Positions 58,323 to 64,000 of a stretch of 64,000 bases of DNA are shown one piece after another. The stretch comes from Utricularia gibba. Taxonomy: Eukaryota; Plantae; Magnoliophyta. Within the stretch, counting starts at the first letter, position 1, and each line of letters opens with the position of its first letter. The stretch covers positions 1,984,001 through 2,048,000 of the forward strand of contig NEEC01000012.1 in the NCBI GenBank assembly GCA_002189035.1. The letters run 5' to 3'. Below the pieces are notes generated by a model, which ran no database searches, was not told the DNA's origin, and saw nothing but the letters and a program-made list of their open reading frames with translations. The translations under genes were made by a program, and so were the position numbers.

Positions 58323-58682
58323 CCCACCAAGCTTCAGTCAGCCTCCACATACTTACCCGTATATCATGGCTGGATGTCATCTGGGGCTGCTGAGCTGCCG
58401 CCCTTGTCGTCTATACTACTTAAACGAGTATTAATTAGTGAGCATCTGCTTGTATTCGTTCATTGCTTGGGATGAAGAGACCACACAGTAAATTATGCCT
58501 CTTTATGCCTGGTGTTTATGGCTTGAATGTGTATACTTGAACTGAATGAAATGAAGGGCGGTTGTGGTGACGGCGCCAGGTTCCCAGTAAGAGTTCCCGT
58601 CAACTGTGGGGAAGATAACGTAGTAATTATACTGCGGTTTGTGAGGGAGTGAGTCCAGGGTGAAGCAGTCCTTGAGCGAGTC

Positions 58683-61600
58683 ATGCTGACGCTGCCTCGG
58701 CTATTAGTTTACTCATCGCCCTTCTCCTCCAACCCCTCGCTATTCAGCCTTTCCCACGTTAACCCAAAACTCTTTCGTCGATTAAGGTTCCTAAACGTCG
58801 CAGCTATGGCCGAGGAATTCGTCAAGGGAAATGTGCACCCTAATGGCGTCGCTATCATCACTCTCGATCGCCCTAAAGCCCTCAATGCTATGAATTTAGG
58901 TTGCTTTCGCCTATTTCCTTTCATTTCTCGTTGTTTTTGAAGTGGGTTTGGGGCGGCGTTTCCTTGATTGATTATTCAAGAGCTTGATGGGTTTTTTTGT
59001 TGTTTGTTGCAGAGATGGATTTGAAATACAAGGGATATCTTGATGAGTGGGAAGAGGATCCTAAGGTGAAATGTGTCTTGGTAGAAGGCAGTACGCCGCG
59101 TGCATTTTCTGCAGGTTGATATTTTAAGTCTTCTTTAGTTGGTTAATTTGATTATATAGTAACACATCTTTTGCAGTGACATTCATAAAAACTAATACCC
59201 ATCTATGTGCTTATCTTGATGTATAGCAGCACGCTTCGTTTTGGTGTTTTGTTTCTAGAACTAAAATTTCAGTATTTTGGTCTGGGTTTTGTTTGATTTT
59301 GGTTGAAACTGCAGTGCTCCATTGACACTGTCTTAAAGGGTGCTGAGGCCAAATATTATACATCATTTATGCAGGAATGGATATTAAAGGTGTTGTTGCA
59401 GAAATTCAAAGAGACAAATTTACTCCTCTTGTAACAAAGGTTTTCTTTTTGTACAAAACATATTTTTCATTGCTTGATTGACTCTGGCATTGTGTCTTGT
59501 AGTTGTTGGGAAAAAAATCGACTTGACTATGTTTTTGGATTTTAATTTGAAGCTACTTAAATTCATAAAGATGGTGTTGTGCAGAAACATTTTCCCAGGA
59601 TCTAGATTATCAGACTGCTAAGGTGTTTAGTTGTAAAATTCTGTGCAGGTGGTGATGTGAAGCAGATTACCAAAAGTAGTCAACTATCAGACATGATTAA
59701 GGTTTTGTAGTGTAGCAAACTAGCTTATATGTAGAGGTTTGTAGGGTGTTCAGCTGGTATGTGGAAAAAATCATAACCTAATTTCTTGAGTCTCTGCCTC
59801 TGGTTCAATGCTCTTTCAACTCCCTGACAAGCAGCTAAAAGTAAATTAGTGGCGCCTTCCTTCTTACCTTCTGCAACCAAAATCTGCATTGATTTAGTGT
59901 CTCTATTCGGCTATTAGGATCTTTGGATTCCTTAAAGCTAGGAGGTGTGCATGTGGGTAGTGTAATGTTCAGATAAAACCACACATAATGCTCTTCCTTA
60001 AACTGTTCATCTTACTGCCAAGTTTTTTTTGAAGCTGCTTTCTCTTACTTGTTGTTTTTGTAATTTCATTGACAGTAAAGGAGTTGGGTTGGCAAAATTA
60101 TCCATACATGTATTCATTGTGAATGCTATATACAGAAAGTTGCATCTATGTCTATGCACATGCTCCTTACTGAAAATTCATCCATGGAGCATTTCTTATT
60201 GTTCTTTGCAATTCCAGGTATTTTCTGCAGAGTATTCTCTGATATGCAAAATATCTGAGTACAAAAAGCCTTACATCTCCTTCATGGATGGTATAACGAT
60301 GGGTTTTGGCATTGGTCTATCTGGTCATGGCCGCTACAGGGTCATAACAGAGGTACCTTCCTTGGATACTTTCTCTCATCAATGACTAGAAAAATATTTT
60401 ATCTGATACGTGATTACATCCAGAAAACAGTTCTTGCTATGCCAGAAAATGGCATAGGCTTGTTTCCAGATGTTGGTTTTGCACATATTGCAGCCAAAAG
60501 TCCTGGAGAAGGAGCAGTGGGTTAGTGACTGTGCATATAGTTCATCTTTCATTACTATAGGTTGTTGTCATTTAGCTCACTGATGATAGCAACGGATTGA
60601 TCCTAACAACCAGAGAAGACTTGAGAATTCCACATATCAGATTTGTTTCCTCTCTTCTTGATCCATTAGGGGCCTATCTTGGATTAACCGGGAATAGAGT
60701 ATCTACTCCAGCTGATGCTCTATATGCTGGTTTGGGATCACACTATGTACCTTCTGCGAGTCTAGCCATGCTAAGGGAAGACCTCCTGGCGACAACCTTG
60801 TAGGCTTCCTCTTCCTACATTTAACACTTGTTATGCTGTAATTTGAACACCCTTGTTCCTAGTGCTTGTAGAACCTTTGCTTCTCAGCATCATCTCTAAA
60901 AAAGTACTTTTGCAATCTGCAAAATTGGTTGTTCAGTCTTCATTCTATACTTGAAAAAAGCTATTCAGTTCACTTCACCTGCAGTTGTTGCTAATTTATC
61001 CAGCTTGTCCTTGTGTTTGATGCAGCTCTGAAGATCCAGATCACAATATCAGATTACTATTAGAAAGATACAGCAAGAATCCGGAGTCTGAGCCTCGGCT
61101 TAAACTGCTATTACCGCGAATAATTTCGACATTCGGAGGTAGCAGATCGATTCAGGAGGTGATCAAGGAGCTAGAAGATCATCAGCAAAGCGGTGATACA
61201 TTAGGTTCGCATCAACATCTTGTTGTCTCTTACCCCGGAAATCAAATATTCAACATTTCTGAATACCATCATCCTTGTATGCAGTGGCTGAATGGGCAAA
61301 AGATGCTCTGCAAGAACTCAAGAAAGGAGCGCCCTTATCTCTTTGCCTCACCCAGAAGCATTTCTCAAAAGTTGCATCTGCCCAAGGCAATGGTGGCAAT
61401 GAACTATCTGAGGTGAGCAGTGCCTGAAATTTGCATAAACACAGTGTTATCCATCTGCCTCTTCTATCATCATGCGTCCACCTTTTTTCACTTGAGTCTG
61501 TTTATACCAGCTACGTGGTGTGATGAAGGCAGAGTATCGCATCGCTTTGCGATCGTCTCTCCGAGACGATTTTGCAGAAGGTGTTCGAGCCGTCTTGGTC

Positions 61601-61915
61601 GACAAAGATCAGGTCAATTGTCTGGTATTACCGTCCTTGAACCTGTGCATGTGTGCTCGTGCATCTGTCTTTTAGCAACCAGTTTCTGTTCGGAATCCCA
61701 CCATCGGCTCTCAGTTTTCAGCCACACCGTTTTGCTTTTCTGCTTGAGTGTGTTTGGTTCTTCCGATGAACCAAACGAACATGCACTGATTCTTGTCAGC
61801 TGGTGGTCTGCAGAACCCGAGGTGGAGTCCGTCGAGCTTGGAGGAGGTGACTAATGGCGAAATTGAAGCTCTGTTTGAACCATTGAGCCCCGACATTGGA
61901 GAATTGAAGGTTTGA
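58683..61915 (+). CDS. 3-hydroxyisobutyryl-CoA hydrolase-like protein 3, mitochondrial (crotonase superfamily), with alternative exons 3A/3B
   Basis: [89 protein letters not shown]; all introns GT-AG; stop at 61913-61915. Confidence 0.94.
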
Positions 61916-62192
61916 TCACGATGGCGTCCCGATGCTCTCCGTCCCTCCTTGATCGAACGGTATCACGATCCTCATCTTGTCTTGTTTCAATGAAAACTGG
62001 TAGCCTCTTTGTCGTGAATAAAAGGATGAGATCTCATGGCCGTCGTCCGAAGGCCGTGCTGCCTCCGAGAAATATCGACGATCCCAGGCGCACTCCGGCC
62101 TAGATCGATGGAGGCGCTCGGGGAAGACGACCCGCGACGCCGTGTCTGTTTTTGAAATTAGAAATTGGGGTATAAAAATTGAACGAGTGACG

Positions 62193-63732
62193 TTAGGATA
62201 CCAAAAGGAGAAAGACAATGCAACCTTCGGCGACGGCGAGCAGAATCCCGACGACTTTCCTCCTGAGAAGCAGGAGGGAGTGGTTGTCGGCGATCATCAC
62301 CGGAAAGACACATTTCTCATCGGAGGGATCCTCGTGGGTGATCCTCGCCAGGCCGGAGAAGTCGCAGTCCCATTCATTCTGACTCTTCATCTGATAGTAC
62401 ATGTTGAAAGCGTAGGAAGCATTCCCCTCGAGAGTCAGATGGTTGCACGATGATCCGAACCCTAGCGCTGTGCAGTCCGATTGGCTGCAGGCGAAATCGA
62501 TGTTCGCCGCAAGATCTCCGTCGACGTCCTCCGCTGCCGCCACCGTGGGTTTCAACACGCACCACCGTCGCACCATGTACTCCACGCCTTCCACCGCCAC
62601 GAGTGCTCCATTTCCGCCTAACAAATCCAGCTCGTACTTGGGTTTTCCGTCGAATTCGAAGATCCCCCAATGCCGTTCGAAGGATCCGGGTTCGATGCTC
62701 TTGGCGTTTTCGTCGAATAGGCTGAAGAGGTAGATTTCTAGTTCCCCCTTTCTTGCCGGCGTTCCTTGCGCCGCGGCTGCGTGGCGGATCAGCCCCTGGT
62801 TGAATCTCCTTGCGTTCTCGATATTCGCGTGCTCGTCGCCGTCGGTAGGCCACCCAACCTCCCCGACGATGATTTTCATATCCGGGAAGCCCGCCTTCGT
62901 CAGAGACCAAACCAGAGTGTCGAAATTCGCATCAAACACATTTGTGTATGTGCAACTTCCGTCTCTCAGGGGACGAGCTCCGCCATCGAAGAAAGCGAAG
63001 TCGACCGGAAAGTATGCATTCTGGTAGAGACTCAAGAACGGGTAGATATTAACGACGAAAGGGGCGTCGTTGGAATGGAGAAATTGGACAATCTGAACGG
63101 TTAAATCACGGATCTCCGGCCGGAAATCGCCGCCAGAAGGAACGGGATTCGATTCCGGCGAGTTGTAGATATCAGCGTTGAACGGAACGGTTGCTTTCAC
63201 CACCGATCCCAATCCTGCTCTGTTTAAAGCTCCTTGAATGTTCCTCAACGCCGGCAAAGTATGCTGTAGATAACTTCCGTTGTACGTTTTCAGAAACGGC
63301 TCATTCCCGACGGCGACGTACCTGAAAGAAACACCAAAATCCGATTCCGGTACCCACAAATTGAACGGTTTTCTTGATCGAAAAAACAACCACCCACCTG
63401 ATATCAACTCCCCCGGGATACGCATATGCGGTGACATTCGCGTCCACCCACTGCGCAGCGGCGCCGGCGTCGAGGCTCAGCTGACGCAGCATACAGTTAG
63501 GAACCGCCAACATAACTTCGATCCCACTCCCGGAAAGCGCTTCCAGAATCTTCCGATCAGCCTCGAAGAGCTTCACCCTCTTGAACCCGTTTTCTTTCAG
63601 CATATTCACCACGCTGTAAGGAGCTAAAGAGTGCTTAGCCATGGTACCCCAGTTGACGCCTATAGCGGCCGCGGCGGCCGGCGAATCCAGCGCCGCCGCG
63701 AAGAGCATCATCAGCAGCAGAAGCTCGTTCAT
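62193..63732 (-). CDS. Glucan endo-1,3-beta-glucosidase (GH17 + X8, probable GPI anchor), 2 exons
   Basis: Signal peptide, IGVNWG, intron 63397-63322, [30 protein letters not shown]8 domain ([29 protein letters not shown]), hydrophobic C-terminus. Confidence 0.96.
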
Positions 63733-64000
63733 CTGTCGACTGTGAAATTGCGAAATGACGGGGAATTCAACCGGCGGCATGCAAGGAAAGCATCCAGGTG
63801 GTGTCCCAGTCTCTAAAACCGACAACTTTTCGCCTTCTGAATCCATACTTCAGTTGTAAGTAGTTGCGCGTATCCGTTCCCGTGAAGGTTGCCAATTGTA
63901 GCACCCGCTCAGGAGCTTTTGGATTAACCGATAAACTACTGCCATTGTGTGGGGGGTGGTTTTGATTTTTAAAAAATAAAAATACATTATTAAATACGCA

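Follow-up and report, generated by a model that had tools for sequence, protein, structure and literature searches.

In a stretch of 64,000 nucleotides (nt) from the Utricularia gibba genome (contig NEEC01000012.1, positions 1,984,001 to 2,048,000 of the forward strand; the window, whose own numbering is used below), a gene of the 3-hydroxyisobutyryl-CoA hydrolase (HIBCH)-like family carries two neighbouring short exons, 3A and 3B, which are spliced into the mRNA one at a time. Each was found in assembled RNA of this species, joined singly to the constitutive exons on its two sides, and 3A and 3B are a true, expressed and mutually exclusive pair in this organism. The segment exchanged between the resulting proteins starts at the AGxD motif of a crotonase-fold enzyme, and to judge from the role of this motif a difference in active-site geometry between the isoforms is most likely. 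We put the probability of this explanation, taken as a whole, at roughly 0.9.

A complete gene of 11 exons was rebuilt on the plus strand by scripted exon assembly from the window, with every intron bounded by GT..AG. Exon 1 spans 58806-58899, or extends from an in-frame upstream ATG at 58683, and has its donor (TAG|gt) at 58899. Exon 2 (59013-59114), reached through the RNA joint 58899>59013, ends in ...PRAFSA plus the first base of a glycine codon (phase 1). Of the two alternative exons, each backed by frame, splice sites and RNA joints, 3A (59375-59439, 65 nt) encodes a segment of 22 residues, the A type (GMDIK...), and 3B (59649-59701, 53 nt) one of 18 residues, the B type (GGDVK...); an intron of 209 nt (59440-59648) lies between them. 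Both have the acceptor tgcag| and the donor AAG|gtttt, both convert phase 1 to phase 0, and both have a length of 3n+2. Exon 4 (60218-60352), which is constitutive and starts in phase 0, encodes 45 residues and carries the second glycine-rich oxyanion-hole motif.

With the start codon at 58806, inclusion of 3A alone gives a complete open reading frame of 377 residues and inclusion of 3B alone one of 373, and the two proteins differ solely in the 22- versus 18-residue segment starting at AG(M/G)D. When both exons are included, the frame reads GTG GTG ATG TGA, and the construct ends after ...VTKVVM at an in-frame TGA (59658-59660); when both are skipped, the frame shifts and a stop follows within exon 4. 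The scripted constructs and the rebuilt model reproduced what the original prediction had given for the coordinates, peptides, acceptors, donors and phases of 3A and 3B, and its frame logic as well. Its start of exon 4, at 60219, had to be moved to 60218, where both the rebuilt model and the RNA joints place it. It had also taken an internal ATG, that at 58806, as the start of the protein. The upstream one at 58683 is in frame, adds 41 N-terminal residues (58683-58805) and lies inside the RNA contigs, whose starts fall at 58626-58655. Proteins begun there have 418 (A) and 414 (B) residues, and the 41-residue extension is likely a mitochondrial presequence.

RNA runs from the same organism contained 33-40% of the words of 58700-62000, as is expected of spliced mRNA, and the contigs of four runs (X1-X4) were aligned to 58500-62100; the values given here for junctions are contig depths. 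Every constitutive intron was removed, and the constitutive joints were present in all four runs. Entry into 3A (59114>59375) had a depth of 139 in X1 and 13 in X3, and exit from it (59439>60218) had 97 and 13, respectively, with neither joint found in X2 or X4. Entry into 3B (59114>59649) was found in all four runs (12.8 in X1, 43 in X2, 11.5 in X3 and 30 in X4), and exit from it (59701>60218) at 43, 11.5 and 30 in X2, X3 and X4, with none in X1. The balance of A to B varied strongly from sample to sample: in X1 it was about 10:1, in X3 about 1:1, and B alone was assembled in X2 and X4. All four predicted joints are therefore present in spliced RNA contigs, with the exon 4 side at 60218, and splicing was found into both alternative exons, each used singly. 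Joints from 3A to 3B (59439>59649) and from exon 2 to exon 4 (59114>60218) were absent from the contigs of X1-X4, an assembly form that drops rare variants.

The gene is orthologous to At3g24360 of Arabidopsis, AC145449_47 of Medicago and LOC_Os06g39344 of rice, which are annotated as mitochondrial HIBCH-like protein 3/4, of crotonase fold. Over their full length, its isoforms are 73-82% identical to angiosperm HIBCH-like protein 3/4 proteins, the nearest relatives being those of Penstemon (82%), Ipomoea, Forsythia and Olea. For the Medicago gene, a gene for enoyl-CoA hydratase/isomerase that has 11 exons, Wang et al. (2008, BMC Plant Biol 8:17; PMC2277414) described a mutually exclusive Exon3 of 65 nt and Exon4 of 53 nt, with expressed sequence tags (ESTs) for each form, giving proteins of 418 and 414 residues, and no isoform with both exons. 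The same study reported the identical splicing pattern in Lotus (LjTC_2465), Arabidopsis At3g24360 and rice LOC_Os06g39344, the retention of the 65-nt exon alone in At4g13360, and, for each of the two exons, bases that are conserved although their codon positions are degenerate (PMC2277414). That pair agrees with the one in the window in gene family, in exon numbers (3 and 4 of 11), in lengths and order, in protein sizes (418 and 414 residues, from the ATG at 58683) and in single use. The species is the one difference: the window belongs to a lamiid, the closest protein in hand being from Penstemon at 82%. The window pair is a new species instance of an already published event, and the novelty that the original prediction implied falls away, since the same 65/53-nt pair was published in 2008 (PMC2277414) and already appears, as X1/X2 isoforms, in the annotation of many species. 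Besides PMC2277414, our literature search found no further papers on this exon pair, and the sole functional data found concern a knock-out of At3g24360, in which several metabolites were altered (PMC6314165). Wang et al. stayed within angiosperms and did not take up where the segment lies with respect to the active site; the only part of the present analysis that may be new is a possible pre-land-plant age of the pair.

Protein searches gave a corresponding picture. With exon 4 as the query, phmmer returned plant proteins of A type and of B type from a set of protein representatives, together with faulty read-through predictions (e.g. P0054). A full-length search with an A-type protein from Rumex (P0018) returned about 120 angiosperm orthologues, which bear the name of a mitochondrial 3-hydroxyisobutyryl-CoA hydrolase-like protein 3 or 4 and carry PF00378 and PF16113; 108 of the 115 typed from this search are of A type. 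When the query was confined to the B segment of P0221, isoform X2 of Chenopodium, about 80 proteins of B type came up, their sources being rosids, Caryophyllales, Brassicaceae, legumes and the orchid Apostasia. In at least 12 other species, A and B proteins are both annotated and are identical outside the 22-residue GMDIK... or 18-residue GGDVK... segment; in 12 species the two proteins also stem from contigs of equal length. Predictions that read through from 3A across the intron into 3B were seen in Vitis (P0258), Cucumis melo (P0232), Linum perenne (P0266) and Malus (P0054/P0055); these are annotation errors caused by this exon pair. Two isoforms of Chenopodium quinoa, X3 (P0168) and X2 (P0218), from two homeologues, are annotated as in-frame hybrids, 16 residues followed by GDVKQII..., in which internal alternative sites connect shortened versions of 3A and 3B. 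The window 3A also has an internal GT, at 59431, which corresponds to a 56-nt version of the exon.

That the swap falls at AG(x)D in an HIBCH-like enzyme of crotonase fold was borne out by domain matches and by the alignment of an orthologue to human HIBCH. Exons 4, 6 and 9 of the window gene each match PF16113 (ECH_2) above the cut-off, exon 4 with E = 4e-17. The orthologue P0221 aligns to human HIBCH (3BPT) with E = 5e-65, and its B segment is aligned there to 21 residues. The PE(T/N)...FPDVG stretch and the glycine-rich motif (DGITMGFG) are conserved and lie in constitutive exons, and AG(M/G)D is supplied by either alternative exon; the PEN...FPDVG stretch, in exon 5 (60424-60520), aligns with PET...FPDVG of human HIBCH. 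The glutamate of PE(T/N) and the aspartate of FPDVG are residues that we take to be catalytic in HIBCH. In crotonases, the x residue of AGxD provides a backbone NH that makes up half of the oxyanion hole. The exon swap changes this residue from methionine in A to glycine in B, and the helix-loop that follows is four residues shorter in B. Because the x residue contributes the oxyanion-hole NH, A and B would most likely differ in active-site geometry, a difference that could in turn give them different substrate ranges or kinetics. Isoenzymes with different acyl-CoA preference, as originally proposed, are a plausible outcome.

An AlphaFold2 model of the Chenopodium A isoform (pLDDT 78.5) places the AG-MD loop before a helix (116-125), a loop (126-130) and the start of a further helix (131-147) that runs into exon 4. 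In a Foldseek search with this model, the best matches among solved enzymes were 4HDT and 3BPT, with TM scores of about 0.7, and chains of the mitoribosomal protein mS47 scored equally. HIBCH-fold proteins serve as mS47 of the mitoribosomal small subunit in plants and fungi (PDB 9evs_f, 6xyw_BE, 6yw5_88, 5mrc_88), the plant mS47 being 'HIBCH-like protein 2', a paralogue distinct from the window gene. Canonical HIBCH enzymes (human 3BPT; Arabidopsis CHY1) share the fold, and the B exon keeps their AGGD; they differ from the window subfamily in the second glycine-rich motif, where they have MGGG and the subfamily has MGFG. We know of no alternative exon pair in canonical HIBCH enzymes.

The two isoforms may instead be alike in substrate preference, with the swap tuning rate, stability, oligomer assembly, regulation or a non-enzymatic role, and we regard this as a possible alternative, though a tentative one. 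It would suit the placement of the presumed catalytic and the second oxyanion-hole motifs in constitutive exons 4 and 5, and also the poor conservation of the 3B tail in deep lineages, where GGDVK.I alone is kept, which would be unusual for a specificity-determining pocket. Non-enzymatic roles exist in the fold, given that HIBCH-fold paralogues act as mS47, but the plant mS47 is a different paralogue ('like protein 2'). Moreover, the exchanged segment starts at AGxD and stands directly before the (F/Y)xxEY of exon 4, so that an effect on the active site would be hard to avoid on textbook knowledge of crotonases. A change in active-site geometry is the reading that we favour.

We then consider the conservation of the two exons. 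Between the window and Penstemon, identity peaks at exon 2, 3A, 3B and exon 4 (17-23/25), and the introns are at the level of alignment noise; together with the spliced RNA joints, these peaks show that the exon structure is no coincidence of open reading frames. Over 21 codons of 3A, Penstemon and Vitis differ at four synonymous and no non-synonymous positions, and the window differs from either of them at five synonymous and three non-synonymous ones. Over 17 codons of 3B, one to two synonymous and 5-10 non-synonymous differences were counted among angiosperms, the exon being variable in its middle. The first 19 nt of 3B are invariant in the window, Penstemon and Vitis, synonymous sites included, as is the GGDVKQI start, and the open reading frame, phase and splice sites of 3B are kept throughout the angiosperms compared. 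Across 186 A peptides, most positions are near-invariant; in 80 B peptides, GGDVK.I is without variation and the final I-E nearly so (93-99%). The pair is old and under purifying selection. The two exons agree in position, phase and length class, and both start with GxD[IV]K. Beyond this five-residue start, their similarity in BLOSUM alignments lies within that of shuffled controls (p = 0.4-0.9); the A exon is strongly conserved from Closterium to angiosperms by the same kind of control (p < 0.001). Exon duplication would be the natural explanation for the origin of 3A and 3B, one that is unprovable from sequence alone.

The depth of this conservation was traced in genomic loci of relatives, with exons located by translation and splice-site scanning. 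Penstemon (L006) and Vitis (L007) both have an A exon of 65 nt and a B exon of 53 nt. Two moss-like contigs, L001 and L010, which come from a metagenome and a Logan assembly, have an A exon of 65 nt and a B exon of 62 nt (GGDVKTMVS.PR...) with canonical sites; they have an NEY signature in common with Sphagnum, and L010 also an identical end of exon 2. Between these two contigs, the B exon shows six synonymous and four non-synonymous differences and the A exon five and six, and identity peaks at both exons. In Sphagnum tenellum (L009), the A exon has 65 nt and B is a decayed relic (L009:2934-2996) that reads GWDIESIGSAPRH... / GWDIESIGSAPRHAF..., in which GGDVK is broken and an in-phase donor is missing. 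In the zygnematophycean alga Closterium, strains NIES-64 (L004) and NIES-68 (L008) have an A exon of 65 nt (GMDIK(G/D)AVGYIKEDI.TPYVPQ) and a B exon of 68 nt (GGDVKAIVT.NREELGM..TAVQ), with AG/GT sites at the B exon in both. These two Closterium species are 78% identical in the HIBCH-like protein; their B exons match at 27/30, on a par with exons 2, 3A and 4, and their introns at 10-17/30. RNA support for the pair comes from angiosperms, and the Closterium and moss-like pairs are known from genomic sequence.

In several lineages a single exon is left. At4g13360 has A only, the Apostasia gene B only, and in Sphagnum B has decayed. At4g13360 (HIBCH-like protein 3) and the gene for P0352 of Apostasia shenzhenica (L005) belong to the same subfamily as the window gene and have the same exon-intron layout. 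The Apostasia gene (L005:3876-4100) has a B exon of 53 nt, and no trace of A was found in its 230-nt intron. The two are mirror-image constitutive versions, one keeping the 65-nt exon and the other the 53-nt exon, whereas the window gene keeps both. Chlorophyte orthologues with the MGFG signature of the subfamily (Pyramimonas P0045; P0056, P0058) have a GGDVK-type segment, and the segment in Mesotaenium reads GMDVKG. The gymnosperm-like transcripts in hand are of A type alone, by which an absence of B is not shown. We infer that B is ancestral because a B-like segment is the only form in the chlorophyte orthologues. A may then have arisen beside B in an early streptophyte, and the alternative pair may have been kept since before the split between Zygnematophyceae and land plants and repeatedly resolved to a single exon. 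For this history as a whole, we consider the chances evenly balanced.

Some further features of the Closterium loci deserve mention. Two intronic blocks of NIES-64, L004:4459-4518 upstream of 3A and L004:4669-4698 in the 3A/3B intron, reach 67-80% identity with NIES-68, against about 40-50% for the intron around them; both are candidate splicing-regulatory elements. The same strain has, at L004:5297-5355 and about 160 nt upstream of the real exon 4, a second, partial copy of the beginning of that exon (VFTAEYTLICTIGRYPKPH...), which has an acceptor of its own (...catcag|). This copy is not obvious in NIES-68 and may be either a pseudo-exon or one more duplicated exon.

The arithmetic of exon lengths would ensure single use among productive mRNAs. 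In every lineage examined, both alternative exons have a length of 3n+2 (65/53, 65/62 and 65/68 nt), and because of this, taking up both or leaving out both always disrupts the frame near the start of this 11-exon gene. The mRNAs with both exons or with neither would carry an early stop far upstream of the last junction, the classic situation for nonsense-mediated decay, and would be expected to be lost in this way. Which of the two exons is taken would probably be set by competition between two similarly weak splice-site pairs, those of two weak-donor exons, under trans-acting control. Frame incompatibility, nonsense-mediated decay and regulated competition are together the most likely mechanism, as far as the sequence permits a judgement.

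A dedicated splicing mechanism, such as docking/selector pairing, steric hindrance or U2/U12 incompatibility, in place of frame and decay, appears unlikely. Conserved degenerate positions in both exons (PMC2277414), the 19 invariant nt at the start of 3B and the two conserved intronic blocks of Closterium would be in line with it. In the window, however, steric hindrance is improbable, the 209-nt intron that separates the two exons being far longer than the minimum, and so is U2/U12 incompatibility, the sites being ordinary GT..AG ones of U2 type without a U12-type donor. For docking/selector pairing, the inverted repeats in 59100-60230 are short, AT-rich and unremarkable, and no intronic block, within the 3A/3B intron or elsewhere, is conserved between the window and Penstemon; intronic pairing was rejected as the main mechanism on these grounds.

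The idea that one exon of the two, with 3B the most plausible candidate, is a duplicate without function or in decay whose inclusion is splicing noise is very improbable and largely refuted: the variable middle of 3B with its excess of non-synonymous differences among angiosperms, the prevalence of A type among annotated orthologues and the loss of an exon in some lineages (At4g13360, PMC2277414; the B relic of Sphagnum) would fit it, but 3B is the sole form assembled in two RNA runs and makes up about half in a third, its open reading frame, phase, length class and splice sites are kept in eudicots, a monocot, the moss-like contigs and Closterium, it is as conserved as coding exons between the Closterium species and between the moss-like contigs where introns are not, Apostasia retains B alone, and a B-like segment is the only form in chlorophyte orthologues.

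Several points weigh against reading 3A and 3B as a functional, strictly exclusive pair. The RNA evidence consists of assembled contigs, not reads, so that forms with both exons or with neither may be missed, and at the joints of X1 and X3 the sides are short (23-30 nt), which is usual for branching in an assembly graph and weaker than long bridging reads. The X1 contigs show about 20 differences from the window, SNPs among them, and one of their joints between exons 1 and 2 is shifted by one base with an extra T, while X2-X4 are identical to the window. X1 comes from another genotype or a close relative, and effects of sample and of genotype on the isoform ratio are therefore inseparable. In Medicago, one EST skips both exons (PMC2277414). 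The fast-evolving tail of 3B, with more non-synonymous than synonymous differences, would fit relaxed constraint as well as functional tuning. Finally, for the B isoform AlphaFold gave a model of too low a confidence for use (pLDDT 56, probably owing to a shallow alignment).

Downstream of exon 5, the window gene continues with exons 6 (60670-60799), 7 (61026-61204), 8 (61285-61412), 9 (61511-61612) and 10 (61814-61915), all on the plus strand, the last of which ends in TGA. Its neighbour stands tail-to-tail with it on the minus strand (62196-63437) and encodes a protein with a glycosyl hydrolase family 17 domain (PF00332, E = 5e-49) and an X8 domain (PF07983, E = 3e-15); a further upstream exon of that gene appears to lie at about 63440-63735.

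In vertebrates, exons 9 and 10 of PKM are adjacent, are used singly and swap a functional segment, giving two isoenzymes from one gene. By analogy, the window pair follows the same principle of exons in homologous position used singly. PKM differs in being an unrelated protein with exons of equal length, known regulators (hnRNPs, PTB) and a known functional difference between the isoforms, the window exons having 65 and 53 nt.

The pair described here is one of few well-supported protein-changing mutually exclusive exon pairs in plants. For Utricularia gibba, models of this gene should carry two coding isoforms, neither one alone nor the read-through of both exons. With the exchanged segment positioned at the oxyanion-hole motif, the isoform pair offers a handle for learning the role of HIBCH-like 3/4 proteins. 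If its pre-land-plant age is true, the pair would be among the oldest conserved protein-changing alternative splicing events of the green lineage, and the lineages that keep both exons or only one of them would form a natural series for comparing alternative splicing with gene duplication.

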